From IMG/VR virus record IMGVR_UViG_3300043399_000877, positions 317,887 to 381,886 of that record: DNA of 64,000 nt. The stretch is one strand, 5' to 3'. The translations under genes were made by a program, and so were the position numbers. This document shows positions 15,990-60,980 of this stretch, in pieces. The notes below the pieces were generated by a model. The model did no database searches. It saw nothing but the letters and a program-made list of their open reading frames with translations, and was not told the origin of the DNA. Each line of letters opens with the position of its first letter. Within the stretch, counting starts at the first letter, position 1.

Positions 15990-18767
15990 TCAGTAACCGT
16001 TGCCGACGACAAGCCAGCCATTTGAGTTAGATATTTCTAAATGTCCGCAGGATTTACCCAACAGTGCATCGGGCGCAGTAGTAACGTTGAGTATAAAGTT
16101 TCCGTCATCGTTGTTGGGTGCCAAGAGTTGCAAATCTGTTATCGGAATCCTTGCAGGTATAGATGCCCCATCACTGTCTATTTCTATAGAAAAGTCGTTG
16201 ACATCAGATATCTCTAACCCGAGAGTTACTTCACTGGGGACCAGGAATATATCACTGGGTATTAAAACTCGGAATGTATTGTTAGTTCTCACAACACCGG
16301 TGCCCACTCTAGTGTTTGCTCCGGACCATTTTAATAGATAGTTGTTGTATTTGCGAGCATCCACTATTGTTTTATCCTCTGGAGGATTTTGGCCAGCCCA
16401 CGCAGTTACTCCATGAATTTTTGTATTGGACCAAATGCTTTGTTGAGTTCCGGTAGTTAAAGTAAAAATAAGGCTAGTGACGTCATTTATATCGATCGGA
16501 GATCCGCCGTCTGGTCCGAGAGAGCCCAATGCCGCAGTGGTTTCAATCATCCAATATCCGCGAGCAAATGACGGAACCGTTGTTGCACTTGCACTAACCG
16601 GAACAGTAACTCCATTTACCGTAAAACCAAAAGTAATACCGTTTGTTGGCGGTTCGCCGGATCCGTATACTCGGTATGTCATGACGTTTCGGTCTATCAA
16701 TGATGCTACTCTTCGGGCATCAGCGCCAACCCAAGTTTGTGTTATGCCTGTAAAATCGTTAGAAGAACTGCCATTCAGTAATAGTTCTTTGGACCATTGC
16801 GTGTATATGCCACGCTTTGTTTCAGTTATATTTGAGATAGTTGCAGTAATAGACATACCAGACGGTTGAAGTACCCATCTGTCAGAAATGTTTATATTTG
16901 TTGTTCCAGAAGTGCTAAAGCTAGTTCCTCTTGAATTTTCCCTAAAACCAGGATTGTCTAGTATTTGCACACATTGGTTTTGGGCAGGTTTTACTAATTT
17001 TATTCCCTGACTTATGCATATTAGTTGTGAGTTTGATCCACGGCTGTCCGCCGGTCCGCTACCGGCTTTTAAGAAATGTATATACGGTGCTACGGTATCA
17101 TTTTCATTCTGTTTTAATTGTATAGAATGACAATATCCCATAGCCGACGCGGGCAAAACTGCCACGGTTGTTCTTGGTCGTCTGTCAAGGGACGTAGCAT
17201 TTAACCACACGTCATCAGCATTAACTGAAATGCAAAATAAATGATTATCCGGTAAGCTGCCAACAAACCTGTCTCGATCGGTTATCAATAAATGTAATTT
17301 TCCACCATAATATAATGAATGAACTGGATTTTCTCCTAATGGAACTTTGGTACTCTGCCATGAGGTCCAAGTGCCTATCGCTCCGTTAGTTGACTTCGAC
17401 ACGTACATTGGATACGGGGATGCTGACCCACCCACGCGAGTAAACATCATCCAACCATATCCGGGTATTTGGACTATACTTGGTTCTACTGGAACAGCGT
17501 TTAACGGCAAACCTTGACTCCCATTCAATAACTCTTCATTCCAAGTAACACCGTTGTCCTGTGTTCGTAATACAGCAGCCCCGACGCCATCATCATATGA
17601 TGCAACCATCCAATCAGATGCGTTTCCACTAAATCCCGGAATCAACTGTCCGCATACGCGATGTTTTTTTGTAAATATTGGTTGATTACCAGTTCCAGTC
17701 CCCAATTGTATTCTAGCCCAAGTGCTGCCCCAGTTATCACTGTAAACAAACCATTGCTTTCTTGGATCCGGCCCACCAGTACCGTCAGTTCCGGTAGTTA
17801 TAACTCCCCCGATTCTGTTGCTGTTCATCAAACCAAATGCAGCTGACAGTATTTTTGGATTTGATTCATCGCTGAAAATAGTTTTTCTTCCGGTTGTTGT
17901 CAGCCCAAAATCTTTAGAAACACTCCATAATATTGACGAACCTCTTGAGTAGTCCGGAGTCGATCCTACAATCTCAAACAAGTGTAGCTCATCAGATCCG
18001 GTATCAAATGCTGTACCTGCAAAAGTAAATTCGTATGGATAAGATCTTAGTGAAACTGCTTCACCAGTGAAAGGTGTTTCTGGCTTTGAAGGTGCGTAAT
18101 ATGCAACATTGTTAACTAGCCAAATACCATTGTATCCTGTAAAGTGTGTGGGTATTGCTGTTACAAGATAGGATTTTCCTTGTAAATCAATAGAGTACCC
18201 TCTAGGTACTCTATTGAAAGCACTTGTATCATTTACAATTCCGTTTCCAACGGCGCCATACGCTGCGGCCTGCCCGGTATTTGCGACACTCAAAACTTTC
18301 CATTTTGCACCATCAGCACTTGAATATGCGCCAGTACCGTCACGGACTAAATTAAAAACTTTATTTGATGAAATAACTTGTATAAAATTTACTGTAGTGG
18401 GAACTGTCGCAAGTGACAATGCGCTGAATGATGCATACGGAGTTTTGACGTATGTTAAATCGGAAAATCCTTTGTTTATTAAAAATTGAGAATCTGATAC
18501 TGTTTCACCGTAAGCTGATTCGTATATTGTTTTTAAACTGTATGGCCCAACGTTTCTACCTTCATCGGATAGCATTTTTTGAGAAACTTCTTGGTTATAT
18601 GCTATAACTCCGGTTCCCTTTAGAGTTCCAACACTAGCGTTTCCGCCTTGCCCAAAAACCGAATATAGTTCTTTAAAGTTTTCGTTTACTTTGCGAAAAC
18701 TTTCTCTAATGCTGTCTCCGGTTCCGTCGTTTCCTTCGATACCAATATTAACTTCCTGTCTAGCCAT
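15990..18767 (-). CDS. Tailspike/receptor-binding protein with a sialidase-like (BNR/Asp-box) propeller
   Basis: N-terminal NDGTGDSIRESFRKVNENF anchor; YGAVGNGIVNDT; Asp-boxes VSKDFGLT, YSDNWGSTW, RTQDNGVTW and KSTNGAIGTW. Confidence 0.75.
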   Translation of the reverse strand: MARQEVNIGIEGNDGTGDSIRESFRKVNENFKELYSVFGQGGNASVGTLKGTGVIAYNQEVSQKMLSDEGRNVGPYSLKTIYESAYGETVSDSQFLINKGFSDLTYVKTPYASFSALSLATVPTTVNFIQVISSNKVFNLVRDGTGAYSSADGAKWKVLSVANTGQAAAYGAVGNGIVNDTSAFNRVPRGYSIDLQGKSYLVTAIPTHFTGYNGIWLVNNVAYYAPSKPETPFTGEAVSLRSYPYEFTFAGTAFDTGSDELHLFEIVGSTPDYSRGSSILWSVSKDFGLTTTGRKTIFSDESNPKILSAAFGLMNSNRIGGVITTGTDGTGGPDPRKQWFVYSDNWGSTWARIQLGTGTGNQPIFTKKHRVCGQLIPGFSGNASDWMVASYDDGVGAAVLRTQDNGVTWNEELLNGSQGLPLNAVPVEPSIVQIPGYGWMMFTRVGGSASPYPMYVSKSTNGAIGTWTSWQSTKVPLGENPVHSLYYGGKLHLLITDRDRFVGSLPDNHLFCISVNADDVWLNATSLDRRPRTTVAVLPASAMGYCHSIQLKQNENDTVAPYIHFLKAGSGPADSRGSNSQLICISQGIKLVKPAQNQCVQILDNPGFRENSRGTSFSTSGTTNINISDRWVLQPSGMSITATISNITETKRGIYTQWSKELLLNGSSSNDFTGITQTWVGADARRVASLIDRNVMTYRVYGSGEPPTNGITFGFTVNGVTVPVSASATTVPSFARGYWMIETTAALGSLGPDGGSPIDINDVTSLIFTLTTGTQQSIWSNTKIHGVTAWAGQNPPEDKTIVDARKYNNYLLKWSGANTRVGTGVVRTNNTFRVLIPSDIFLVPSEVTLGLEISDVNDFSIEIDSDGASIPARIPITDLQLLAPNNDDGNFILNVTTAPDALLGKSCGHLEISNSNGWLVVGNGY

Positions 18768-35845: not shown

Positions 35846-36039
35846 CTCAGCATAAACAACGTGCGTTTGTGATCGTCAAATATTTTTATACCAGCACACT
35901 GGTAATCAATAAAAATCAGTTGGTAGTCGACATCTTTTTTGCCCATGTTTTGATCAATCCAAGACAGTAAGCCATGATAATAACCGGCCCGTCGCCGTTC
36001 AAACATTATAATGTCGTCTGTTATACTCTCAGATTTCAT
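35836..36039 (-). CDS. Small-family paralogue
   Basis: LSWIDQN...GIKIFDDHKRTLFMLRWG. Confidence 0.65.
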   Translation of the reverse strand: MKSESITDDIIMFERRRAGYYHGLLSWIDQNMGKKDVDYQLIFIDYQCAGIKIFDDHKRTLFMLRWG

Positions 36040-36445
36040 AATCCAAGTCGCCAGTGTCGCTCATGTTGTCACGACGGCCGCGCTGGCCGTCGTACTCTAG
36101 ATGGCGGATATAATTACGCAAATATCTTTCGATATTTTCACGGCCCACGGGATTCATGCTATGAACATAGAAATCAAAATCTGCAGGAATTTCGAGGTTC
36201 CCGTCCATATGCTGGTCCACAATCCACTGAGCAATATTGAAGCCAGTGGGCTCGTTGTTGCCGAGGTCGTGATCGAAAGAAATGAAGTTCGGAGCAATTA
36301 ATCCATGATTGATTATGGCTTGAATTGCTTGATCTCGATTGCGCACAACTGTCCACTGCTGCTCACGATAACGCTCTTGCATACGGCGAGGGGCCCAAGT
36401 AACGTCCTGCAAATTGCGCTCGTCATCAATAAAAAGATTCCACAT
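36029..36445 (-). CDS. Cyclic-phosphate-processing receiver-like domain protein
   Basis: LFIDDER, ISFDHDLG and VHSMNPVGRENI motifs. Confidence 0.8.
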   Translation of the reverse strand: MWNLFIDDERNLQDVTWAPRRMQERYREQQWTVVRNRDQAIQAIINHGLIAPNFISFDHDLGNNEPTGFNIAQWIVDQHMDGNLEIPADFDFYVHSMNPVGRENIERYLRNYIRHLEYDGQRGRRDNMSDTGDLDYEI

Positions 36446-37135: not shown

Positions 37136-37501
37136 TTACAGCAGTTTTAGATCCCCGGTTATGGGTTGCAGACGCTCGTGCGTGTCTGGGCCCACAGCAA
37201 TGCAGGTGTTGGTGGGCGTGCCGTTAAACACAGTCAAGCCTGCGTCCGTGACAAGCTCAGCGATGAGCCCTGCCGCACGGGCGCGATTGTATACGTCCAG
37301 CAACTCTTCCTCGCTGCTGACACCCACTGCAATCTTGGTAAACTTACCTTCTAGCCATTCTTTGACTCTCGGGTCAGCAAAGTTCACAAGAGTGGCTTTC
37401 ATGCTTGCATGTGCGCCCTGCGCGATCTCTTTACCACGCGGCATCTTGAGATCTTTTCTCATTACAATAATCTGTTTCATAGCAGTATCCTTAGTCGTCA
37501 A
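37136..37501 (-). CDS. Peptidyl-tRNA hydrolase, Pth2 type
   Basis: KQIIVMRKDL..GKEIAQGAHA, DAGLTVF and TCIAVGP motifs. Confidence 0.93.
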   Translation of the reverse strand: MTTKDTAMKQIIVMRKDLKMPRGKEIAQGAHASMKATLVNFADPRVKEWLEGKFTKIAVGVSSEEELLDVYNRARAAGLIAELVTDAGLTVFNGTPTNTCIAVGPDTHERLQPITGDLKLL

Positions 37502-39478: not shown

Positions 39479-39878
39479 TTGTTGTCCCATTCGGAAAAAA
39501 TACCATGGTTGGCTTGCCGGTTTTCTTCGCATAGTCGTGCGTATACCAAGTGCCGCCGTTGTTCTGCCACGAATTTTGATATGGCACAACTAACAGCACA
39601 TCACACTCATTGACTATCTGTCTATTTCTTGCGAAATAACTGAGTGGTTCTCGAAAATCGTCTGATCGGTGGTGCGCCCTAAGTTCTGTTTTAATCGGTG
39701 GATGACAGACCACCTTAATACCCATTTCCGCAGCCAATATAGCAACCTGTTCATCTACTCCCACACAGTCTCCGTGATGCAATTCTGTGATGCCGTTTCG
39801 ACTGGTTAGATAGTTTCTAACCAGTCGAAACTGTTCATCATTCATTCCGGAACGGGTACCAGTTACGCCAACTTTCAT
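39465..39878 (-). CDS. SLOG/DprA-like nucleotide-binding protein
   Basis: VGVTGTR, LHHGDCVGVD, ARNRQIV and GGTWYT motifs. Confidence 0.7.
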   Translation of the reverse strand: MKVGVTGTRSGMNDEQFRLVRNYLTSRNGITELHHGDCVGVDEQVAILAAEMGIKVVCHPPIKTELRAHHRSDDFREPLSYFARNRQIVNECDVLLVVPYQNSWQNNGGTWYTHDYAKKTGKPTMVFFPNGTTNVHD

Positions 39879-40393
39879 TATCTCTCGTTCCATTGTCCAA
39901 CAATGCTCATAGCATGTTTCATATGCTTGTAAAGCAATCCGTTTTCTGGATCAGTTCGTACTAGGCGTTTTTTGCCCAGCACTTCGTCAAATCGATAAGC
40001 GTTGTCATCAAACAAGATGAAGTCACGCACGTCAGTTCCGTAGTTAGCAAGGTACTCTTGAACCTCGTGTGCGCGGTCATTAAGACCTGCACGTTGCCAG
40101 ATAACGTTATCCGGATCAGTTTTCCACGGGCTTGCAAGTTTTCCACGGAAGCCGCTGTTGCCGAAGGCAGCAGAGACCCAGTGCAGCACCATATTGTCAT
40201 CGTTACGGAGATAATTTTTCCAGGTTGACATAAGAACAAACTCAACCGGGTAACGGTCGTGAAGTTTGTTCATGAAATCAACAGCAACCGGGTCAAAGCG
40301 ATGCCACATTTCATAAGTGGCGTTATGTGCATAATGCACACGGCTGCTGGTAAAGACGCCGTCGATGTCTAAAAAAACTAGATATCTGCTCAT
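39878..40393 (-). CDS. HAD-family phosphatase (RNA-repair associated)
   Basis: FLDIDGV, STW and ILFDD motifs. Confidence 0.8.
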   Translation of the reverse strand: MSRYLVFLDIDGVFTSSRVHYAHNATYEMWHRFDPVAVDFMNKLHDRYPVEFVLMSTWKNYLRNDDNMVLHWVSAAFGNSGFRGKLASPWKTDPDNVIWQRAGLNDRAHEVQEYLANYGTDVRDFILFDDNAYRFDEVLGKKRLVRTDPENGLLYKHMKHAMSIVGQWNER

Positions 40394-41274: not shown

Positions 41275-41507
41275 ATGTCATTTAGTAATTCATTTAGAAC
41301 TGCGTCAACCAGTTCTTCTACGAACTCATCTTCTTCACTTGCGAGTACAAAATCGTCTGCACTCATAGTACCAACCACCCATGCATCCCAGTGCCGTGTG
41401 CAAAACATTGCATCAGACAAAGATTCTCTAACGCGGTCTCGGAGTCGCCGTTTTAACGGCTCCGACACAGTTGCAATCAGGGCACGTCGGTCAAGTGCAG
41501 TGGTCAC
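41265..41507 (-). CDS. Hypothetical protein
   Basis: CTRHWDAWVVGTMSADDF motif. Confidence 0.6.
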   Translation of the reverse strand: MTTALDRRALIATVSEPLKRRLRDRVRESLSDAMFCTRHWDAWVVGTMSADDFVLASEEDEFVEELVDAVLNELLNDMPS

Positions 41508-41947
41508 AACACGTAAACCACTGGTTCAACGTCAGTCATTTCATCTTCGATGATCTGACTGATAATGTTCCAATTCCCGCCGCCGAGCCCAGCACCGATT
41601 TGCGGCATAGCAACCTGCGTTTCACCACTTTGACGAAGAACGCTGTTGATGGTGCGCATACAATCAGCCACTGCTTCGTAGTTCACAAAACGACTACCGT
41701 CTCGACCATACAAATGCTGAGTAATTGCGTTGATGATTACTTTGCCATTTGAAGGTACAAACTGTACATCACCCAGCTTGAGGCCATGCTCGTCGTACTG
41801 CTCAACATAAAACCGGTATGCGTCAAAGTGGTCGTCACGAACTATACGTGCAACACCTGAACCCATAACGCCCTGGGCATTGCAACCGTGTGCAATGTGC
41901 AGGATGTCGGTCTCGAAAAGATTGCCCTTGCGGTATTGGATTTTCAT
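41504..41947 (-). CDS. Macro domain protein (ADP-ribose processing)
   Basis: GNLF, IAHGCNAQGVMGSGVA and PQIGAGLGGGNW motifs. Confidence 0.92.
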   Translation of the reverse strand: MKIQYRKGNLFETDILHIAHGCNAQGVMGSGVARIVRDDHFDAYRFYVEQYDEHGLKLGDVQFVPSNGKVIINAITQHLYGRDGSRFVNYEAVADCMRTINSVLRQSGETQVAMPQIGAGLGGGNWNIISQIIEDEMTDVEPVVYVL

Positions 41948-43387: not shown

Positions 43388-43465
43388 TGGAACTGGCTGG
43401 GGGATTTGAACCCGCCGCTACAAGATCCACAATCTTGTGTGCTAAACCGCTAACACTAAACCAGC
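43388..43465 (-). tRNA. tRNA-His(GTG)
   Basis: Loop TTGTGGA; no G at -1; G1-U72; CCA. Confidence 0.85.
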
Positions 43466-43754: not shown

Positions 43755-43832
43755 TGGCGGATAAGGTTGGACTCGAACCAACAACGCAAGGCCTCAACCT
43801 GGCACCCGCTCTACCTCTTGAGCTACCGATCC
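43755..43832 (-). tRNA. Aberrant tRNA-Asn(GTT)-like gene
   Basis: Canonical D- and T-arms and GCCA end; irregular anticodon arm with loop AGGTTGA. Confidence 0.6.
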
Positions 43833-44101: not shown

Positions 44102-44178
44102 TGGTGTGCCGGGTGAGATTTGAACCCACGACCTTGGAGTTAAGAGCTCCCTGCTCTAGACCACTGAGCTACCGGCGC
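44102..44178 (-). tRNA. tRNA-Lys(CTT)
   Basis: Loop CTCTTAA; CCA. Confidence 0.92.
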
Positions 44179-44484
44179 ATTATTTGGAAGATACGCTCGC
44201 TCTCCCAGCCAGGGCACTTTCGCTCCCCAACAAAAGCACAAGCGTATCATCGAAATAATGGTGAACCGGGTAGGATTTGAACCTACGTTGGCATTGCTGC
44301 TACAGATTAAAAGTCTGTCCCCATCGGCCTCTCGGGCACCGGTCCTAATGAATTCTGTGAAGTTTTGCTTTTCACGTTTGCGTTTCGATTTATATGGTTT
44401 ATCGTGTGCGCCCGCAACTCGAAACCGTGCTGCGGCCACAAACGGATTCCTCTGTTTAGGAATCTTCTGACGTTTTCGTTTCAT
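44140..44484 (-). CDS. Basic peptide ORF that runs without a stop codon into tRNA-Lys(TTT)
   Basis: MKRKRQKIPKQRNPFVAAARFRVAGAHDK...; SD AAGGA; only the first ~46 codons lie outside tRNA genes. Confidence 0.55.
   Translation of the reverse strand: MKRKRQKIPKQRNPFVAAARFRVAGAHDKPYKSKRKREKQNFTEFIRTGAREADGDRLLICSSNANVGSNPTRFTIISMIRLCFCWGAKVPWLGERAYLPNNAPVAQWSRAGSS
44259..44345 (-). tRNA. tRNA-Lys(TTT) with a class II (long variable arm) body
   Basis: ACAGA-CTTTTAA-TCTGT arm; variable region AGCAGCAATGCCAAC; CCA. Confidence 0.8.
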
Positions 44485-44570
44485 CTAAAAATCTTTCCTT
44501 GTATTTGCGTATAGCTGCTATCAGTGCCGCTGTGGGCGCGGGTGGTCGGTTACACGCTTCTACGATACGG

Positions 44571-44759
44571 TCATACTCTTCCTGAGTCAACAGTATCGTC
44601 TCGGTCTCCTGATCGGTCGTCTTCATTTTTTCTACTTCCTGCTCGGTTCATTACTATAAGATATTCTGGATCAGTAACTCCAAAATCTCCGGGATTCTGT
44701 ATAATCTGCTCCATCTGCTGTTCTGACAGCAATGAAAAAAAACTGTTTGATCCAGTCAT
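44571..44759 (-). CDS. Small hypothetical protein
   Basis: 62 aa; SD AGGAG. Confidence 0.45.
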   Translation of the reverse strand: MTGSNSFFSLLSEQQMEQIIQNPGDFGVTDPEYLIVMNRAGSRKNEDDRSGDRDDTVDSGRV

Positions 44760-44857: not shown

Positions 44858-44943
44858 TGGTGGGTCGTCTAGGAATCGAACCTAGCATGGGAGTTAACCC
44901 GGCGGATTTACAATCCGCTGCCACACCTTGTAGCATACGACCC
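44858..44943 (-). tRNA. tRNA-Tyr(GTA)
   Basis: Loop TTGTAAA; long variable arm; atypical D-arm; CCA. Confidence 0.85.
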
Positions 44944-46269: not shown

Positions 46270-47166
46270 TCAATCCCTCGTTAGGTCATCAGCCAAGTTT
46301 ATTATTTTATCCAGCGCATACAATTGATCCCGCCAACCGGATCGTATCCCGCTGAGTCCATAGTATGCACCGGCAATCTGCCCGGTTACTGCTGCAACAG
46401 TGTCGGTATCATCTCCGAGGTTTGTGGCTAGCAACACGGCTTCATCAAAACTATCGGTATTATAAAAACACCAAATAGCTGCTTCCAACGTATCAATTAC
46501 ATATCCGCTGCTGCGAATATCGTTGCGCTTTCTTGACCACAGGTCCCGGTTGGTCATTTGCTTGACCTCGTCAGCCCAGTGTTCTGCGGGCTTGACAGCT
46601 AGTGCCGCCTCCTTGCTAGTAGCGTGTAGGGCGCGATGCAAGATGCTTGCTAGAAGCTCGCAGCTATGCACGGCAAGGCTGTATGCATGGGTTGTTTTGC
46701 TCTGCGCCGCCGCAATGCTCACAGCCAAATCTGGATCCTCGTGGTAATACAAAACCACCGGCGCCAGTCGCATTATACTGCCGTTTCCGCTGTAATTTCT
46801 ACTTGCATTGTTTTCAACAGCACCACGTTCTATAAAGTTTTCCAGAGCGTTAACAGTGGTCATCCCGATATCAAAACATACACCGGTACTGCTGTTGTGT
46901 CCACGAAGATACCAGTTTGTAAAACGATTTAATAGATCAACCGGTTGTAGACCGTCGCAGTCTCTCAAACTTTCGGCAAGGCAAAGAGCCATGCTGGTAT
47001 CATCGGTCCAGTATCCCACTGGCAAGTTGAACGGTCCGCCGCCCAGCATATCTGTAACCGGAGGATAACTGTCTCTCTTTTTAAATTCAACTGCGGCGCC
47101 CACAGCATCACCTACTGCAAGTCCCACAAGCATTCCACGAAGTCGATCTTTTAATTTTTCGTCCAT
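46270..47166 (-). CDS. ADP-ribosylglycohydrolase (DraG/ARH family)
   Basis: GLAVGDAVG, WTDDTSM, GNGSIMR and GDDTDTVAAVTG motifs. Confidence 0.95.
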   Translation of the reverse strand: MDEKLKDRLRGMLVGLAVGDAVGAAVEFKKRDSYPPVTDMLGGGPFNLPVGYWTDDTSMALCLAESLRDCDGLQPVDLLNRFTNWYLRGHNSSTGVCFDIGMTTVNALENFIERGAVENNASRNYSGNGSIMRLAPVVLYYHEDPDLAVSIAAAQSKTTHAYSLAVHSCELLASILHRALHATSKEAALAVKPAEHWADEVKQMTNRDLWSRKRNDIRSSGYVIDTLEAAIWCFYNTDSFDEAVLLATNLGDDTDTVAAVTGQIAGAYYGLSGIRSGWRDQLYALDKIINLADDLTRD

Positions 47167-50762: not shown

Positions 50763-50933
50763 TTATCCTAAATTAAAGATTTTATCAGCGATAACACACA
50801 TCACAAGCACCAGCGCACTTGCAACAAGGATTCGCAATCCAATATCAAATCCAAAAAACAAGATTCCAATTGCTGTCCCTAAAAACACGCTGGCAAAACT
50901 ACCGAGCCCCAGTATTGCTATGATTAGCTGCAT
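50763..50933 (-). CDS. Small two-TM membrane protein
   Basis: Hydrophobic; start MQLII by stop/start overlap. Confidence 0.5.
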   Translation of the reverse strand: MQLIIAILGLGSFASVFLGTAIGILFFGFDIGLRILVASALVLVMCVIADKIFNLG

Positions 50934-51379
50934 TAGAAGTCCGCCCCGCTCTGGTTGCAATCAAATACCCAAATTCCGGCATCACGCCACATACGAACAA
51001 CACGCGGGCGATCGTCAAAAACCATGTCCGGCTTTTGTCCATAGTCAGCGATGATTTGCTCTAGCATTTCACCTTTGACAATGTCGTCGGCGCGATAGTC
51101 ACCGTCCGCCCGCATGTAAATTTTCAAGTAGCCACGAAGGCGGTTGTTGGCCAGCCAGGTTTCAGTAGCTACACGGCTGGCTTCATTCCTGCCAGTGGCC
51201 AAAATAACAGCATGACCAGCATCAGTCATTTGACGGAACACTTCCGCAGTAGACTGGATTAAGGTATCATGCGGAATACCAGCGTCAAAAGCCGCCCAAT
51301 TTTTGGGCTTTGTGCGAACATAATGCAGCCGGTGCCGACAGTCTGCGAGAGTTCCGTCGATGTCAAAACAAATTAGCAT
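50933..51379 (-). CDS. HAD-family polynucleotide 3'-phosphatase (T4 PNK phosphatase-domain-like)
   Basis: FDIDGTLAD, TGR, MRADGDYRAD and FDDRPRV motifs. Confidence 0.88.
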   Translation of the reverse strand: MLICFDIDGTLADCRHRLHYVRTKPKNWAAFDAGIPHDTLIQSTAEVFRQMTDAGHAVILATGRNEASRVATETWLANNRLRGYLKIYMRADGDYRADDIVKGEMLEQIIADYGQKPDMVFDDRPRVVRMWRDAGIWVFDCNQSGADF

Positions 51380-52813: not shown

Positions 52814-53446
52814 TTAAATCTCCACATCAATGTAGTCAAGCTCAGCCAAGCACTGAAATACTGTTCCTTCAATCTTCTCACGGCTCGTGTAGTGCCAGTG
52901 ACCGAAGTACCACTGCTCAGGCTGATGCTGCTCAAACATATATTGCAGCATTTCTCCCGTGCGTGTCAAGTACAATTTTGGCTGGCCGCCCCAAACACGT
53001 TTGCCGGTACGGATGAACATGCGATAGGCAGTGAGTGTTGGGCAGTCATGAGTGATCATAACTCTCGGACGGACCGTTAGGTATGTATCAAGTACACGCT
53101 CAAATTCAGAAGAACTAAGTTGCTCAGTCTGCCACCAGTCGTATCCGGGAGTACGATAATCAGCATCGATACTCCAGGCACCGCCCACAAACATCACATC
53201 ATTCTCTACTGTACCGTCTGCTATCCAAGAAAGCATTTTAGGACACTGATTGGGATTATCGTGATTACCACGAATAAATCTGTGGCCAGTTCCACCAATA
53301 GTGTCGTTTACACGATCGTGCCAATAATCACCTTGTCCCATACCGACGCCGAAATCGCCCAGCTGAATACTACGATCGCAGTCGGCGATTACAGTTTGAT
53401 AGTCGTTCCAGAGACCGTGGACGTCTCCGATTATTCTTGTTAACAT
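52814..53446 (-). CDS. Calcineurin-like metallophosphoesterase
   Basis: GDVHG, LGDFG, RGNHD, THDCP and FGHWH motifs. Confidence 0.92.
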   Translation of the reverse strand: MLTRIIGDVHGLWNDYQTVIADCDRSIQLGDFGVGMGQGDYWHDRVNDTIGGTGHRFIRGNHDNPNQCPKMLSWIADGTVENDVMFVGGAWSIDADYRTPGYDWWQTEQLSSSEFERVLDTYLTVRPRVMITHDCPTLTAYRMFIRTGKRVWGGQPKLYLTRTGEMLQYMFEQHQPEQWYFGHWHYTSREKIEGTVFQCLAELDYIDVEI

Positions 53447-53843: not shown

Positions 53844-54086
53844 TTATGTGTTTGTTTGTTCTTTAAGTTTGCGGCAACATACCACTGGCATACCAACCAC
53901 TTCAAGTTTTTCGTGATCGTATATATAGCCCGGTTTGTCGAGAATAACTAGGGCAATTGTTTTTGCGTAATCACCCCAGCCGCCGATCCGGCCTTGCATC
54001 CCATCCATACTGCTGGCAGTATGACAAAATTCAATGCGATCTCCGACTTTTGCCAGTTCCCCACGATCTCTGTCATATTTAAACAT
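53844..54086 (-). CDS. Hypothetical SH3-like protein
   Basis: DRDRGELAKVGDRI. Confidence 0.5.
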   Translation of the reverse strand: MFKYDRDRGELAKVGDRIEFCHTASSMDGMQGRIGGWGDYAKTIALVILDKPGYIYDHEKLEVVGMPVVCCRKLKEQTNT

Positions 54087-55231
54087 TAGTTGCCTCCTTT
54101 GAGCAAAAACTCGTTGCTGATAGTTTTGAAGCTGAAGCTCGGGTCTTCGTTACACTTCCAGACAAGACCTTCGCGGACCTTGTGGTTGATGCTCGGACCT
54201 TCTGCAAGAACAAGACCTTCTTCGACACTGACGGGTGCTTTCCAGTTAGTACCATGCAGCGGAACATGTTCAAGACCGATCATGTGGCAGACGCTGCGGC
54301 GTTCACCTGGAGCGAGGTATGTGTGCTTTGCAATATCAAAGATGTCGAACACAAAGAATCGATGTTCTTTGAAGCCTTCACGGTTACCTTGAATGCCCGG
54401 CCCCATGATTTCGCCCTGAAAAGCAAGACCATCCGGAATCCTATCGCCGATCTTCAGGGCCATAGCTACAAAGGTGTTGTCTTTGTTCTCTTCGTTGATC
54501 TTCAGTTCAAGGTTCCGGCTGCAAACACGAAGTTCGCCTTCCCAACGGAAGATCGTGCAGCTTGAGCCATCGAGCTTCATGGTGACTTCGTAAGTCGGCT
54601 CTTTGAAGTCTTCTGGCACGACGACCGGATGCTCTTCAAGAGTCTGAGTCTCGGCGTTCCAGACCTTCTCCGTAGCGAACCGCTTGGCCCGCTTTTGGAT
54701 GTCGCCAAAGCAGTTCTGAATCCGCTCCTGATCGGTCTTGGGAATCAGCGAAGTCGGGAACGTGCCAGCAGCTTGACCTTGAAGCTGAGCAGGAATAGGT
54801 GCTTCCCACTTCTGGATGCCAAGAATTTCAGTAAGATCGGTATCTACTTCAAACAGTCTAACTGGTTCAAGATCACCAAACTGAACATAACCTCCGGGAA
54901 GGTATTGAATAAACTGTTGTGGAAGTTCACGAACAGTTTCGTCAATCTTGAGTAGAAGCCCCTGCGAAACTTGTCCACGAAGCTTAATAGTCCGCAGACG
55001 TTCACCCTTGACACCGTTGTATTCACGAGGTTCTTGACCTTTCGAGAGGAATGGAGCAAGTTCATGAGGAACCCATGAGTCAATTTCTAGGTAGAGAGCA
55101 AGATCACCAACCTTGAACTCATCTTTCTTGACGACGACTTTCCAGCCGTCAACAGTGGCAACCACGATGGCGTCGGCGCCTTCAATAGGTTGAATGTCGG
55201 CGATACGCCGAATAGTGGCAAGTTTACGCAT
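54086..55231 (-). CDS. RNA ligase, DRB0094 family
   Basis: MRKLATIRRI, LRGQVSQGL, PKTDQERIQN, KLDGSS, QGEIMG, EGLVWK and FKTIS motifs. Confidence 0.93.
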   Translation of the reverse strand: MRKLATIRRIADIQPIEGADAIVVATVDGWKVVVKKDEFKVGDLALYLEIDSWVPHELAPFLSKGQEPREYNGVKGERLRTIKLRGQVSQGLLLKIDETVRELPQQFIQYLPGGYVQFGDLEPVRLFEVDTDLTEILGIQKWEAPIPAQLQGQAAGTFPTSLIPKTDQERIQNCFGDIQKRAKRFATEKVWNAETQTLEEHPVVVPEDFKEPTYEVTMKLDGSSCTIFRWEGELRVCSRNLELKINEENKDNTFVAMALKIGDRIPDGLAFQGEIMGPGIQGNREGFKEHRFFVFDIFDIAKHTYLAPGERRSVCHMIGLEHVPLHGTNWKAPVSVEEGLVLAEGPSINHKVREGLVWKCNEDPSFSFKTISNEFLLKGGN

Positions 55232-55589
55232 ATTTGTTCCTTCCGATTCCGGCAATGTCGTTAAGCATTTTTTCCTGTTCAGCCCACTTGAGTTGTTGAT
55301 CTACACGAATCTTCAAATAGTCACGAATCAGTTCTCTGTTATTCCAAATCCACTGTTCATAGCGAGCCAGCTTCTTGCAGCACTCTTCGCATTCTTCTAC
55401 GAAAGTATGTCCTTCGACTTCAACATATCGAAACCAACGACTGCTTTCCCACTCTTCTTCATCGTAGTCTTCGGGTGGGTTCCAATCGATACCGCAGTCA
55501 CAGTGTAACCATGCACTGTACCCACCGCGGCCGGCATCCCACATCATATCGCTTGCAATCCCATCTCGGGGCATGGTATATTGTGTCAT
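55224..55589 (-). CDS. Hypothetical Zn-binding protein
   Basis: CDCG...CEEC. Confidence 0.55.
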   Translation of the reverse strand: MTQYTMPRDGIASDMMWDAGRGGYSAWLHCDCGIDWNPPEDYDEEEWESSRWFRYVEVEGHTFVEECEECCKKLARYEQWIWNNRELIRDYLKIRVDQQLKWAEQEKMLNDIAGIGRNKYA

Positions 55590-58844: not shown

Positions 58845-60980
58845 TTAGGAAAAGATCGAGTCAAACTCGCGGGTTTCAGTGTTATACACGAGTTCAAGTT
58901 TAGTGCTTTGCACACGGTTTTCCAGGATCAAGTCTGCAATAAGCGGTTCAATGTTGCTTACCACATATCCCTGTAGGCCGCGGGCGCCGTTGCGTGGGTC
59001 GTAATGATCTGCACAGAACGCACTCACACTAGCATCGCTGACCACAATATCCATGCCGCTTTCGCGATATGCACGATTGAGATCTTTGAGTTCGCGCTTG
59101 ACAATCTTCTCGATGCTGTCCAGTTCCAGTCTACGGAAGCAGACGATGTTCTGGCGACCGGCAAAACGGTTAAGGAATTCCGGACGGTAAATTCTATCCA
59201 GTTCCTCGTTTGCAAGAGCCTCTGCTTCCGTGTAAGTCAGCCCAACATCCAGGAAGTAAGGCTGGCCGATGTTGGTGGTCATAATCACCATCGACTCCGA
59301 GAAGTTGACCGTACGCCCGTGGTTGTCAGTCAGTCGACCATCACTCAGGATTTGCAGGAACAGGTCAAACACTGCCGGATCAGCCTTCTCAATTTCATCA
59401 AAAAGGATGATACGGTTGGGGTTTTGACGCATTGCGTTGGTAAGGATACCACCGCGTTCCGATCCTTCGTAACCAGCCGGAGCACCGATCAGTTTTGCAA
59501 CCGAATGCTTTTCCATGTATTCACTCATGTCGAAGCGAGTCAGTGCAGCTTCATCATCTTTCAGTGCATGTGCCAGTGCCTTACACACTTCGGTCTTACC
59601 GGTACCACTCGGGCCCATAATAAGGAAGCTAGCCTGCGGCTTGCTGCCGTTACGACGACCGATACGTGCAACCTTAATTGCGTTTGCAATTTTCTTGATT
59701 ACCTCGGTTTGTCCGAACACACGGCTGTTGAGTGCAGCTTCAAGGTTACGCAGCTTTTCGCGCTCGTCTTCGTTCAGCTTGTTGGCCGGGATACCCGACA
59801 GTCGGCTAAACTCCGCAAGCACAAAGTCTTTGGTAAGGCTCAGCTGATCGTTGATCTCACCCGTAAGCACGTCAAACTCTGCACGGTTTTCGTTAATAAC
59901 CGTCTGAAACTTGCGAATTTCTTCGCGCAGCGCACGAACACGGGCACTTTCAAATCCGGCAGCTTTTGCAGTGCTGCTGAACATCTGAATACGACGAGTG
60001 GGCAGGGCTTCTTCTTCGACCTTTTCGCCACGAGCTTCCATTTCAGCTTCCAGCTTCTTCTGTGCAGCAATTTGCTCTTCGAGATCAATAACTGCAAGTT
60101 CACCATCACGCTGGAATTGGAACAGCTCTTTGATACGATCTTGAGTTTTCGCAAACTCGGCATCCAATGCAACAATAGCCGGATCACCTTCCTGCGCACC
60201 TTCGATCAACATCTTGACCACTTTAGGGTGTCGTTTGTGTGCGTCCAGTCTATAAGTTGACAAGGCGCGGTCCAGTAGGTTAGTGCTGCGCTCCGGCTGT
60301 GCGCGGCTCAAACTTGCATCGCGAGTACGATACTTGTTGGTCAGTTCAACAGCAGTTTCCACAGCATCCGCATCGATGCGAATATCGTGGTGGTTGCTGA
60401 GACCTTCGGCAGTAACTCGAACGATTTCCATAAGGTCATTGCCAGTGGGCTCATTGAGATCAATCATCGTATAGTGCTGACGCATGTCGCTGTGTGCGCT
60501 CAACACCATGTCAAGATCCTGATCCTTGGTCTCAAGAATAACCTGGGTCTCGCCGTTCTTAACAAGGCTGTTCAGACTGTTGATAAAGTGGCTGCAACCG
60601 TTGTTGCGAGCAGCTTCGATAAAGTCACGAACGTCCTCGATAACAAGAATACTATCTGGCGTTCGCTTGAGGATAGCAAGAACGTTTGTGAACCCTTTGT
60701 TAATTTCCTCATGATTACCAGAAGTAAAGAGTTCGTCAGTTCTGAGCCAGAAAAGACGCTTGCTGATAATATCAAAAGTCACATCCGGCTGGTCTTTGGC
60801 GGCTTGCAGTCCGAGAGTGAGGGTGCTTGCGCCCACACCTCCGGGACCAACCAGGATAACTGATGCGGCCTTATTCCGCATCAGCACCGAGGACAACCGC
60901 TTGAGATCAGCATCGCGCCCAACCAGCCGGAAGTTTTTGTGTTTTGCCAGCAGTTCGTTGCCGGAAATCAAGTATTGCAT
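58845..60980 (-). CDS. ClpB/ClpA-like Hsp100 AAA+ ATPase lacking the N-domain, with degenerate NBD1
   Basis: NBD2 GPSGTGKT, RFDMSEYMEKHSV, GAPAGYEG, LFDEIEKA, GRLTD, RPEFLNR and GARGL; NBD1 Walker A reads GPGGVGAS. Confidence 0.92.
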   Translation of the reverse strand: MQYLISGNELLAKHKNFRLVGRDADLKRLSSVLMRNKAASVILVGPGGVGASTLTLGLQAAKDQPDVTFDIISKRLFWLRTDELFTSGNHEEINKGFTNVLAILKRTPDSILVIEDVRDFIEAARNNGCSHFINSLNSLVKNGETQVILETKDQDLDMVLSAHSDMRQHYTMIDLNEPTGNDLMEIVRVTAEGLSNHHDIRIDADAVETAVELTNKYRTRDASLSRAQPERSTNLLDRALSTYRLDAHKRHPKVVKMLIEGAQEGDPAIVALDAEFAKTQDRIKELFQFQRDGELAVIDLEEQIAAQKKLEAEMEARGEKVEEEALPTRRIQMFSSTAKAAGFESARVRALREEIRKFQTVINENRAEFDVLTGEINDQLSLTKDFVLAEFSRLSGIPANKLNEDEREKLRNLEAALNSRVFGQTEVIKKIANAIKVARIGRRNGSKPQASFLIMGPSGTGKTEVCKALAHALKDDEAALTRFDMSEYMEKHSVAKLIGAPAGYEGSERGGILTNAMRQNPNRIILFDEIEKADPAVFDLFLQILSDGRLTDNHGRTVNFSESMVIMTTNIGQPYFLDVGLTYTEAEALANEELDRIYRPEFLNRFAGRQNIVCFRRLELDSIEKIVKRELKDLNRAYRESGMDIVVSDASVSAFCADHYDPRNGARGLQGYVVSNIEPLIADLILENRVQSTKLELVYNTETREFDSIFS

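Follow-up and report, generated by a model that had tools for sequence, protein, structure and literature searches.

We found that a 382-kb freshwater phage carries a lysine tRNA with the long extra arm normally found only in leucine, serine, and tyrosine tRNAs, and that this tRNA belongs to a large family of such tRNAs in phages for which we found no published description. We analyzed a stretch of 64,000 nucleotides (here called the window), which is the last 64 kb of a 381,886-bp IMG/VR virus record (IMGVR_UViG_3300043399_000877) that CheckV rates as complete. ARAGORN called a tRNA-Lys(UUU) of 87 nt at window positions 44259-44345 on the minus strand, and the Rfam tRNA model (RF00005) scored it at 55.5 bits against a gathering score of 29 (E 4.9e-10). 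The original prediction had described a tRNA-Lys(UUU) on a class II, Tyr-like scaffold, with an anticodon stem ACAGA/UCUGU, a loop CUUUUAA, a given D region, and a 15-nt variable arm. Each of these elements was present when we read the minus strand, so the observation itself is confirmed. Its interpretation, that of an anticodon-switched tRNA that may resist Lys-specific nucleases or could misinsert another amino acid at AAA, was only partly supported, as described below.

All parts of the tRNA lie on the minus strand. The 5' strand of the acceptor stem (GGACCGG) is at 44339-44345, and its 3' strand (CCGGUUC), the discriminator A73 (44262), and the encoded CCA (44259-44261) are at 44259-44269; the stem has 7 bp, including a G2·U71 wobble. 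The D arm (44320-44336) has 3 bp plus G13·U22 and the loop AGAGGCCGA. The anticodon arm (44302-44318) has the anticodon UUU at 44309-44311 in a canonical loop and keeps U36-A37-A38-U39-C40 and paired CNG motifs (CAG/CUG). The variable arm (44287-44301) consists of 1 unpaired A, a GCA/UGC stem of 3 bp, a GCAA loop, and a 4-nt unpaired 3' linker, CAAC. The T arm (GUAGG/UUCAAAU/CCUAC) is at 44270-44286, giving a 7/5 acceptor/T geometry. The arm exceeds the 10 nt and forms the helix of its own expected of a class II tRNA, and it departs in this respect from the class I body (variable loop of 4 to 5 nt) of bacterial tRNA-Lys. The minimum-free-energy fold is exactly this five-helix cloverleaf (−28.1 kcal/mol), although the z-score against shuffles was only −1.6, so thermodynamics alone is weak evidence.

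The gene lies in an array of 15 ARAGORN-called tRNAs. A further tRNA was found only by Rfam (43391-43465, minus strand; 45.2 bits); it reads as tRNA-His(GUG)-like and would be the 16th tRNA of the window. The gene called tRNA-Asn(GUU) at 43755-43832 (minus strand) has an odd anticodon loop, AGGUUGA, with G at position 33, and an Rfam score of only 35.4 bits, and it may be noncanonical or decaying. Among the 42 tRNAs of the whole phage, the class II tRNA-Lys is the only one with anticodon UUU. Its neighbor and partner isoacceptor, tRNA-Lys(CUU) at 44102-44178 (minus strand), is class I and has a C2·A71 mismatch.

The tRNA is not a one-off anticodon switch. A search for near-identical DNA in GenBank phages gave no match, but a distant blastn search with the 87 nt found full-length relatives annotated simply as tRNA-Lys or tRNA-Asn. 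ARAGORN on these and on follow-up hits showed long-arm tRNAs with Lys anticodons (UUU or CUU) in Rhodobacter phage RcXuper, Mesorhizobium phage Cp1R7A-A1, Ruegeria phage V10, Caulobacter phage phiCbK and kin, Brevundimonas phage Kikimora, Xanthomonas phage BUDD, and Microcystis phage Mwe-JY26, and with the Asn anticodon GUU in Escherichia coli phages 4MG and Av-05, Salmonella phage 7t3, Providencia phage PR1, and Mesorhizobium phage Cp1R7A-A1. A pattern scan returned at least 119 contigs in IMG/VR and 61 loci in bacterial and archaeal genomes. Together, these gave 204 unique class II tRNAs with Lys (UUU, CUU) or Asn (GUU) anticodons. Most of the genome hits lie in arrays of 10 to 35 tRNAs, the usual look of prophages or of phage contigs binned into MAGs. 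In phiCbK, RcXuper, and Cp1R7A-A1, the pattern scan found only class II Lys tRNAs. The tRNA-Lys genes of these three phages have 87 to 91 nt and the same arm architecture, but they carry U73 instead of A73, are 78 to 84% identical to the window tRNA, and are annotated only as tRNA-Lys, with no comment on the extra arm; RcXuper even has the same acceptor stem.

The structure of these tRNAs is conserved by compensatory change. In an alignment of 67 members with a 15-nt arm, 95.6% of cells paired, compared with 65% in shuffles and 34 to 48% with slid partners, and the covariation score was 0.81 against 0.20. Changes on both sides were seen in 22 of 24 pairs, and all five helices covaried. The variable-arm helix was 95% paired, and all three of its pairs showed double changes (for example, GCG/CGC, UGC/GCA, AGC/GCU, and GCA/UGC); the arm is mostly capped by GNRA loops. 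Three IMG/VR contigs carry copies 92 to 97% identical to that of the window, with compensatory changes in the T stem. Contigs from two independent metagenomes (freshwater and aquaculture) cover the gene with 0 differences, and a 3.4-kb wastewater contig that differs at 59 sites over 1,254 bases shows none inside the tRNA among the listed differences (109 differences were not listed). One contig of a related strain from an estuary metagenome replaces window positions 44271-44380, which hold most of the class II tRNA, with 138 other letters while the flanks stay alike, which suggests cassette-like exchange of tRNA genes within the array.

The description of the scaffold as Tyr-like holds structurally. 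The variable arm (3- to 4-bp stem, tetraloop, and 3 to 4 unpaired 3' nucleotides) and the D arm are closest to tRNA-Tyr and tRNA-Ser of the same phage arrays and not to tRNA-Leu. Taken alone, the variable-arm architecture of the family (one 5' unpaired nucleotide, a 3- to 4-bp stem, a tetraloop, and a 3' linker, usually of 4 nt, reading CA(U/C/A)C) is closest to tRNA-Tyr of the same loci (3-bp stem, linker of about 3 nt) and is unlike Ser (5- to 7-bp stem, linker of 0 to 1 nt) and Leu (1-nt linker). The D arm is nearest to class II Tyr, Thr, Asn, and Ser and never to Leu. The window tRNA lacks the Leu-type D arm (consensus UGGnGgAAnuGGuAgAC) and 1-nt linker of tRNA-Leu, as well as the G73 and long variable stem of tRNA-Ser. 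Over the whole body outside the arm, however, the nearest other tRNAs are class I Lys, and the acceptor stem, discriminator, and anticodon arm are of the Lys type. We define the phage-borne class II Lys/Asn/Thr family by a D loop AG.GG.CGA, a 3- to 4-bp arm capped by a tetraloop, a 3' linker CA(U/C/A)C, and an acceptor identity that matches the anticodon, and the window tRNA has all of these. To call the tRNA anticodon switched is therefore misleading: it is not a recent duplicate of the phage's own tRNA-Tyr (44858-44943), to which it is dissimilar, but belongs to an old, widespread family.

The identity nucleotides follow the amino acid of the anticodon across this family. Class II Lys tRNAs carry A73 (122) or U73 (52), and class II Asn tRNAs carry G73 (22 of 23) and often U1-A72 (14 of 23); both match the class I isoacceptors of the same loci. 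Moreover, a 2:71 wobble in the class II Lys tRNA co-occurs with one in the class I Lys tRNA of the same contig (19 of 26 pairs, against 8 of 118 otherwise). G2·U71 is essential for class I LysRS, the discriminator matters little to that enzyme, and the pair is an antideterminant for E. coli class II LysRS (PMC9976931). By these rules, the window tRNA has the tRNA-Lys anticodon nucleotides (U35 and U36, with U34) as well as A73 and G2·U71. Alphaproteobacteria use class I LysRS, and the best available hint to the host, a ClpB-like double-AAA ATPase of 711 aa (58845-60980, minus strand), has its nearest cellular homologues, at 55 to 57% identity, in Alphaproteobacteria (Dongia, Nordella, and Taklimakanibacter). 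Profile searches with PF00152, PF00579, and PF01921 found no LysRS, AsnRS, AspRS, TyrRS, or TrpRS in the phage, so a host enzyme would have to charge the tRNA.

The codon AAA behaves as lysine in the genes of the phage. AAA makes up 4.2% of codons (41.6 per 1,000; 4,886 codons) and 71% of Lys codons. In 92 gene pairs with related phages, 1,187 aligned AAA sites matched Lys in 66% and Arg in 8% of cases, much as AAG does (Lys, 73.5%), with no excess of Tyr, Leu, or Ser. In the ClpB-like gene, 10 of 15 AAA codons lie in Lys-majority columns and none in Tyr, Leu, or Ser columns. A reassignment of AAA was therefore rejected. An alternative genetic code was also not supported: the phage has a tRNA with the amber-suppressor-type anticodon CUA (17688-17762 of the phage genome, minus strand, outside the window), but the standard code gives 92.6% coding density, reading through TAG adds less open frame than reading through TGA or TAA, and there is no sign of TAG recoding.

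The array lies among RNA-repair and tRNA-care genes, all on the minus strand. Pfam searches identified an RNA ligase (54086-55255; PHA02142 OB fold plus RNA_ligase, E 2e-30 and 8e-25), a metallophosphoesterase (Metallophos; 52814-53446), a PNKP-type HAD phosphatase (50933-51379; PF25109, E 2e-26), an ADP-ribosylglycohydrolase (46270-47166), a Macro domain (41504-41947), the HAD domain of "Swiss Army Knife" RNA-repair proteins (HAD_SAK_2; 39878-40393; PF18143, E 3e-18), the peptidyl-tRNA hydrolase PTH2 (37136-37501; PF01981, E 1e-30), and a cyclic-phosphate-processing receiver domain (cREC_REC; 36029-36445; PF20274, E 2e-23). Directly upstream of the tRNA, a 56-aa ORF (44456-44626) matches the C-terminal half of TacA1-like antitoxins (PF08681, E 1.3e-6, 28.7 bits) and may be a phage inhibitor of GNAT toxins that acetylate aminoacyl-tRNA.

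We also examined which anticodons occur on class II bodies. In loci chosen for a class II Lys(UUU), the share of class II genes was high for Lys CUU (0.30), Asn GUU (0.28), Thr UGU (0.21, against 0 of 30 for Thr GGU), and Ile UAU (0.43) and near zero for Val, Phe, Asp, and Arg. In a scan of the scaffold that did not fix the anticodon, the top noncanonical anticodons were Asn GUU (14), Lys (11), and Thr UGU (10); the scan also found genuine Tyr (8) and Ser (14) and some Gly (7), Gln (3), and His (2), each with fitting acceptor features, as well as Cys anticodons. Published work shows that PARIS AriB cuts Lys UUU, Thr UGU, and Asn GUU between positions 40 and 41, that P2 OLD cuts the anticodon stem of Thr UGU, Lys UUU, and Asn GUU at paired CNG motifs, and that a bacterial Schlafen cuts Lys UUU in the anticodon arm. 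The commonest noncanonical anticodons on the scaffold are thus also the preferred targets of AriB and P2 OLD. Class II Lys tRNAs keep the canonical U36AAUC40 more often than class I phage Lys tRNAs (101 of 151 against 22 of 52), which would fit protection by the body rather than by stem-loop mutation. It is important to note that these family counts are not phylogenetically independent.

Taken together, we favor, with moderate confidence, a working lysine tRNA that would be transcribed within the tRNA array, charged by the host LysRS (a class I enzyme, as G2·U71 suggests), and used to read AAA, the main lysine codon of the phage. It is built on a class II core, a Tyr/Ser-type D arm plus a short GNRA-capped extra arm with a 4-nt 3' linker, that is shared by a large, mostly phage-borne family of Lys, Asn, and Thr tRNAs. 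Our analysis establishes the structure, its conservation and covariation, the lysine-type identity nucleotides, the Lys meaning of AAA, and the size of the family, whereas charging with Lys and any effect of the arm on defense nucleases are inferences from sequence. That this is a functional Lys tRNA appears likely. Some features leave room for doubt: A73 and G1-C72 also suit TyrRS and LeuRS, and because class IIb synthetases approach the tRNA from the variable-loop side, the arm could hinder a class II LysRS.

A more tentative part of this reading is that the extra arm, which lies next to the 3' strand of the anticodon stem, hinders defense nucleases that cut tRNA-Lys in the anticodon stem, so that the phage would keep an AAA decoder when the host tRNA is destroyed. 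In its broadest and still speculative form, the arm would be a counterdefense at the level of the tRNA body, making A-codon decoders (Lys UUU/CUU, Asn GUU, and Thr UGU) poor substrates for AriB, P2 OLD, and perhaps Schlafen-type enzymes while leaving the anticodon loop and the synthetase identity elements untouched, and phages across many host phyla, and a few bacteria, would have adopted it. The resistance to Lys-directed nucleases proposed in the original prediction remains plausible and fits the gene neighborhood and the anticodon spectrum of the scaffold. However, the closest relatives by the ClpB-like gene carry ordinary class I tRNA(UUU) instead, so the arm is dispensable, and the presence of Gly, Gln, His, and Cys anticodons on the scaffold weakens the link to particular nucleases. 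Further, the anticodon stem-loop is fully canonical and keeps every motif that AriB and P2 OLD are reported to use, and PrrC, which accepts bare anticodon stem-loops, might still cut the tRNA.

The main alternative, which we consider possible but less likely, is that this is a plain codon-supply tRNA whose extra arm is a neutral inherited feature of a tRNA lineage that spreads between phages inside tRNA arrays. It would help an AT-richer phage (42% G+C) to read AAA in a host that is poor in tRNA-Lys(UUU), and the likely host group, Alphaproteobacteria, is often G+C rich. The high use of AAA, the class I tRNA(UUU) that relatives carry for the same task, the additional anticodons on the scaffold, and the lack of escape changes in the anticodon stem-loop are consistent with this view. 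On the other hand, the arm is maintained by compensatory change in well over 100 sequences, many phages keep class I and class II Lys tRNAs side by side (80 loci), noncanonical class II status is concentrated in Lys, Asn, Thr UGU, and Ile UAU, and the gene lies in an RNA-repair neighborhood.

Misinsertion at AAA by TyrRS, LeuRS, or SerRS is unlikely. The Tyr-like variable arm and D arm, A73, G1-C72, and U35 could favor it, and LeuRS and SerRS do not read the anticodon (PMC9976931). However, AAA sites show no Tyr, Leu, or Ser signal, and with so many AAA codons misinsertion would damage the whole proteome. Further, G73 for Asn and U73 in 29% of Lys tRNAs across the family do not fit TyrRS or LeuRS, the stem is too short and the 3' linker too long for the Ser type, the D arm is unlike that of Leu, and neither G34 nor A36 of the Tyr anticodon is present. 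Similarly unlikely is a decoy or inhibitor made mainly to occupy a tRNA-Lys-directed nuclease or toxin. A canonical Lys anticodon stem-loop on an unusual body would suit such a role, and the AriB paper raises competition by overexpressed phage tRNAs as a possibility, but full acceptor identity, an encoded CCA, and a normal T arm are conserved, the tRNA is the only AAA decoder of the phage, and in four Actinomycetota MAGs a class II gene is the only tRNA(UUU) found, which argues for a role in translation. A decaying gene is very unlikely despite the weak thermodynamic z-score and the absence of RNA evidence (none of the listed sequencing runs is on record as RNA), given the covariation, the zero differences in two independent metagenomes, the presence of all invariant tRNA nucleotides, and the Rfam score well above threshold.

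Among described systems, the tRNA-Lys(UUU) of phage T5, which resists PARIS AriB (PMC11464382; bioRxiv 10.1101/2025.02.04.636281), is likewise a phage-encoded AAA decoder in a tRNA array and is thought to keep translation going when the host tRNA-Lys is cut. The T5 tRNA is class I (78 nt), as is T5 tRNA-Asn, and escapes by two changes in the anticodon stem (U39>A and A41>C), whereas the window tRNA has no such changes and differs in its body instead. Bacterial tRNA-Tyr shares the short variable stem with a long 3' linker, a CCCGAG..GGCC-type D arm, A73, G1-C72, and U35, and the anticodon arm is nearly identical to that of E. coli tRNA-Tyr, but the window tRNA has the anticodon UUU rather than GUA, has G2·U71, and belongs to a family in which the 3' linker is typically 4 nt rather than 3 nt. 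The Borrelia burgdorferi-type tRNA-Lys for class I LysRS (PMC9976931) shares G2·U71 together with U35 and U36, and the small weight of the discriminator for this enzyme fits the A/U73 mix in the family; that tRNA is class I, and the link rests on sequence features only. The allo-tRNAs (PMC7609411) are class II bodies that carry anticodons outside Leu, Ser, and Tyr, but they have 8/4 or 9/3 acceptor/T geometry and Ser or Ala identity whatever the anticodon, whereas this tRNA is 7/5 and its identity nucleotides follow the anticodon.

Textbooks limit long-arm tRNAs in bacteria to Leu, Ser, Tyr, and Sec, and reviews still state that class II status is limited to Leu, Ser, and Tyr (PMC7609411). Full-text literature searches found no paper that describes long-arm Lys or Asn tRNAs in phages or bacteria, although this shows absence from the library searched only. 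The window tRNA is one of at least a couple of hundred Lys, Asn, and Thr tRNAs of this build, which occur in phages of Alphaproteobacteria, Enterobacteria, Xanthomonas, and cyanobacteria and in many uncultured lineages. It is a tRNA-Lys by anticodon and identity nucleotides that differs from other bacterial tRNA-Lys in its body. If these tRNAs are charged as their identity nucleotides suggest, LysRS and AsnRS (or nondiscriminating AspRS) tolerate a class II body, which would interest anyone engineering tRNAs. If the arm protects against tRNA-cutting immune systems, it is a new route of phage escape, different from the known anticodon-loop mutations and from tRNA repair, and it would break the rule that limits bacterial class II tRNAs to Leu, Ser, Tyr, and Sec.

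Some copies occur in cells. Lone class II tRNA-Lys(UUU) genes outside any tRNA array were found in Actinomycetota MAGs (L026, L028, L029, L033, L034, L048, L054, and L072; L numbers denote the loci fetched for this analysis). In four MAGs of the phylum (G001, G002, G003, and G005, the last with its gene in a tRNA array, L044), pattern and BLAST searches found no class I tRNA(UUU), only class I Lys(CUU), although due to the incompleteness of MAGs the class II gene can be called the sole tRNA(UUU) only provisionally. Class II tRNA-Lys is not a general actinobacterial trait: among 300 sampled genomes of the phylum, only the seed genome had a real match, and the trait is therefore rare in cells.

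Other departures from the standard tRNA body were seen in the same data. The annotated 84-nt tRNA-Lys(UUU) of Escherichia phage 4MG (L007, 1237-1320), which ARAGORN does not call, has a normal 5-nt variable loop but a greatly enlarged D loop, a different way for a phage Lys tRNA to depart from the standard body. The reverse swap also occurs: tRNA-Leu genes of class I size (74 to 78 nt, short variable loop) are common in phage tRNA arrays, with 72 unique ones in the loci fetched (e.g., L018, L036, and L046) and one in this phage (18889-18962 of the phage genome, minus strand). Finally, tRNA-Ile(UAU) genes of 90 to 95 nt in L046, L047, L075, L109, L125, L139, L151, L157, and L159 have a 22- to 24-nt variable arm with a conserved CCAGAUUAG-like motif and form a second, distinct long-arm family in phage arrays.
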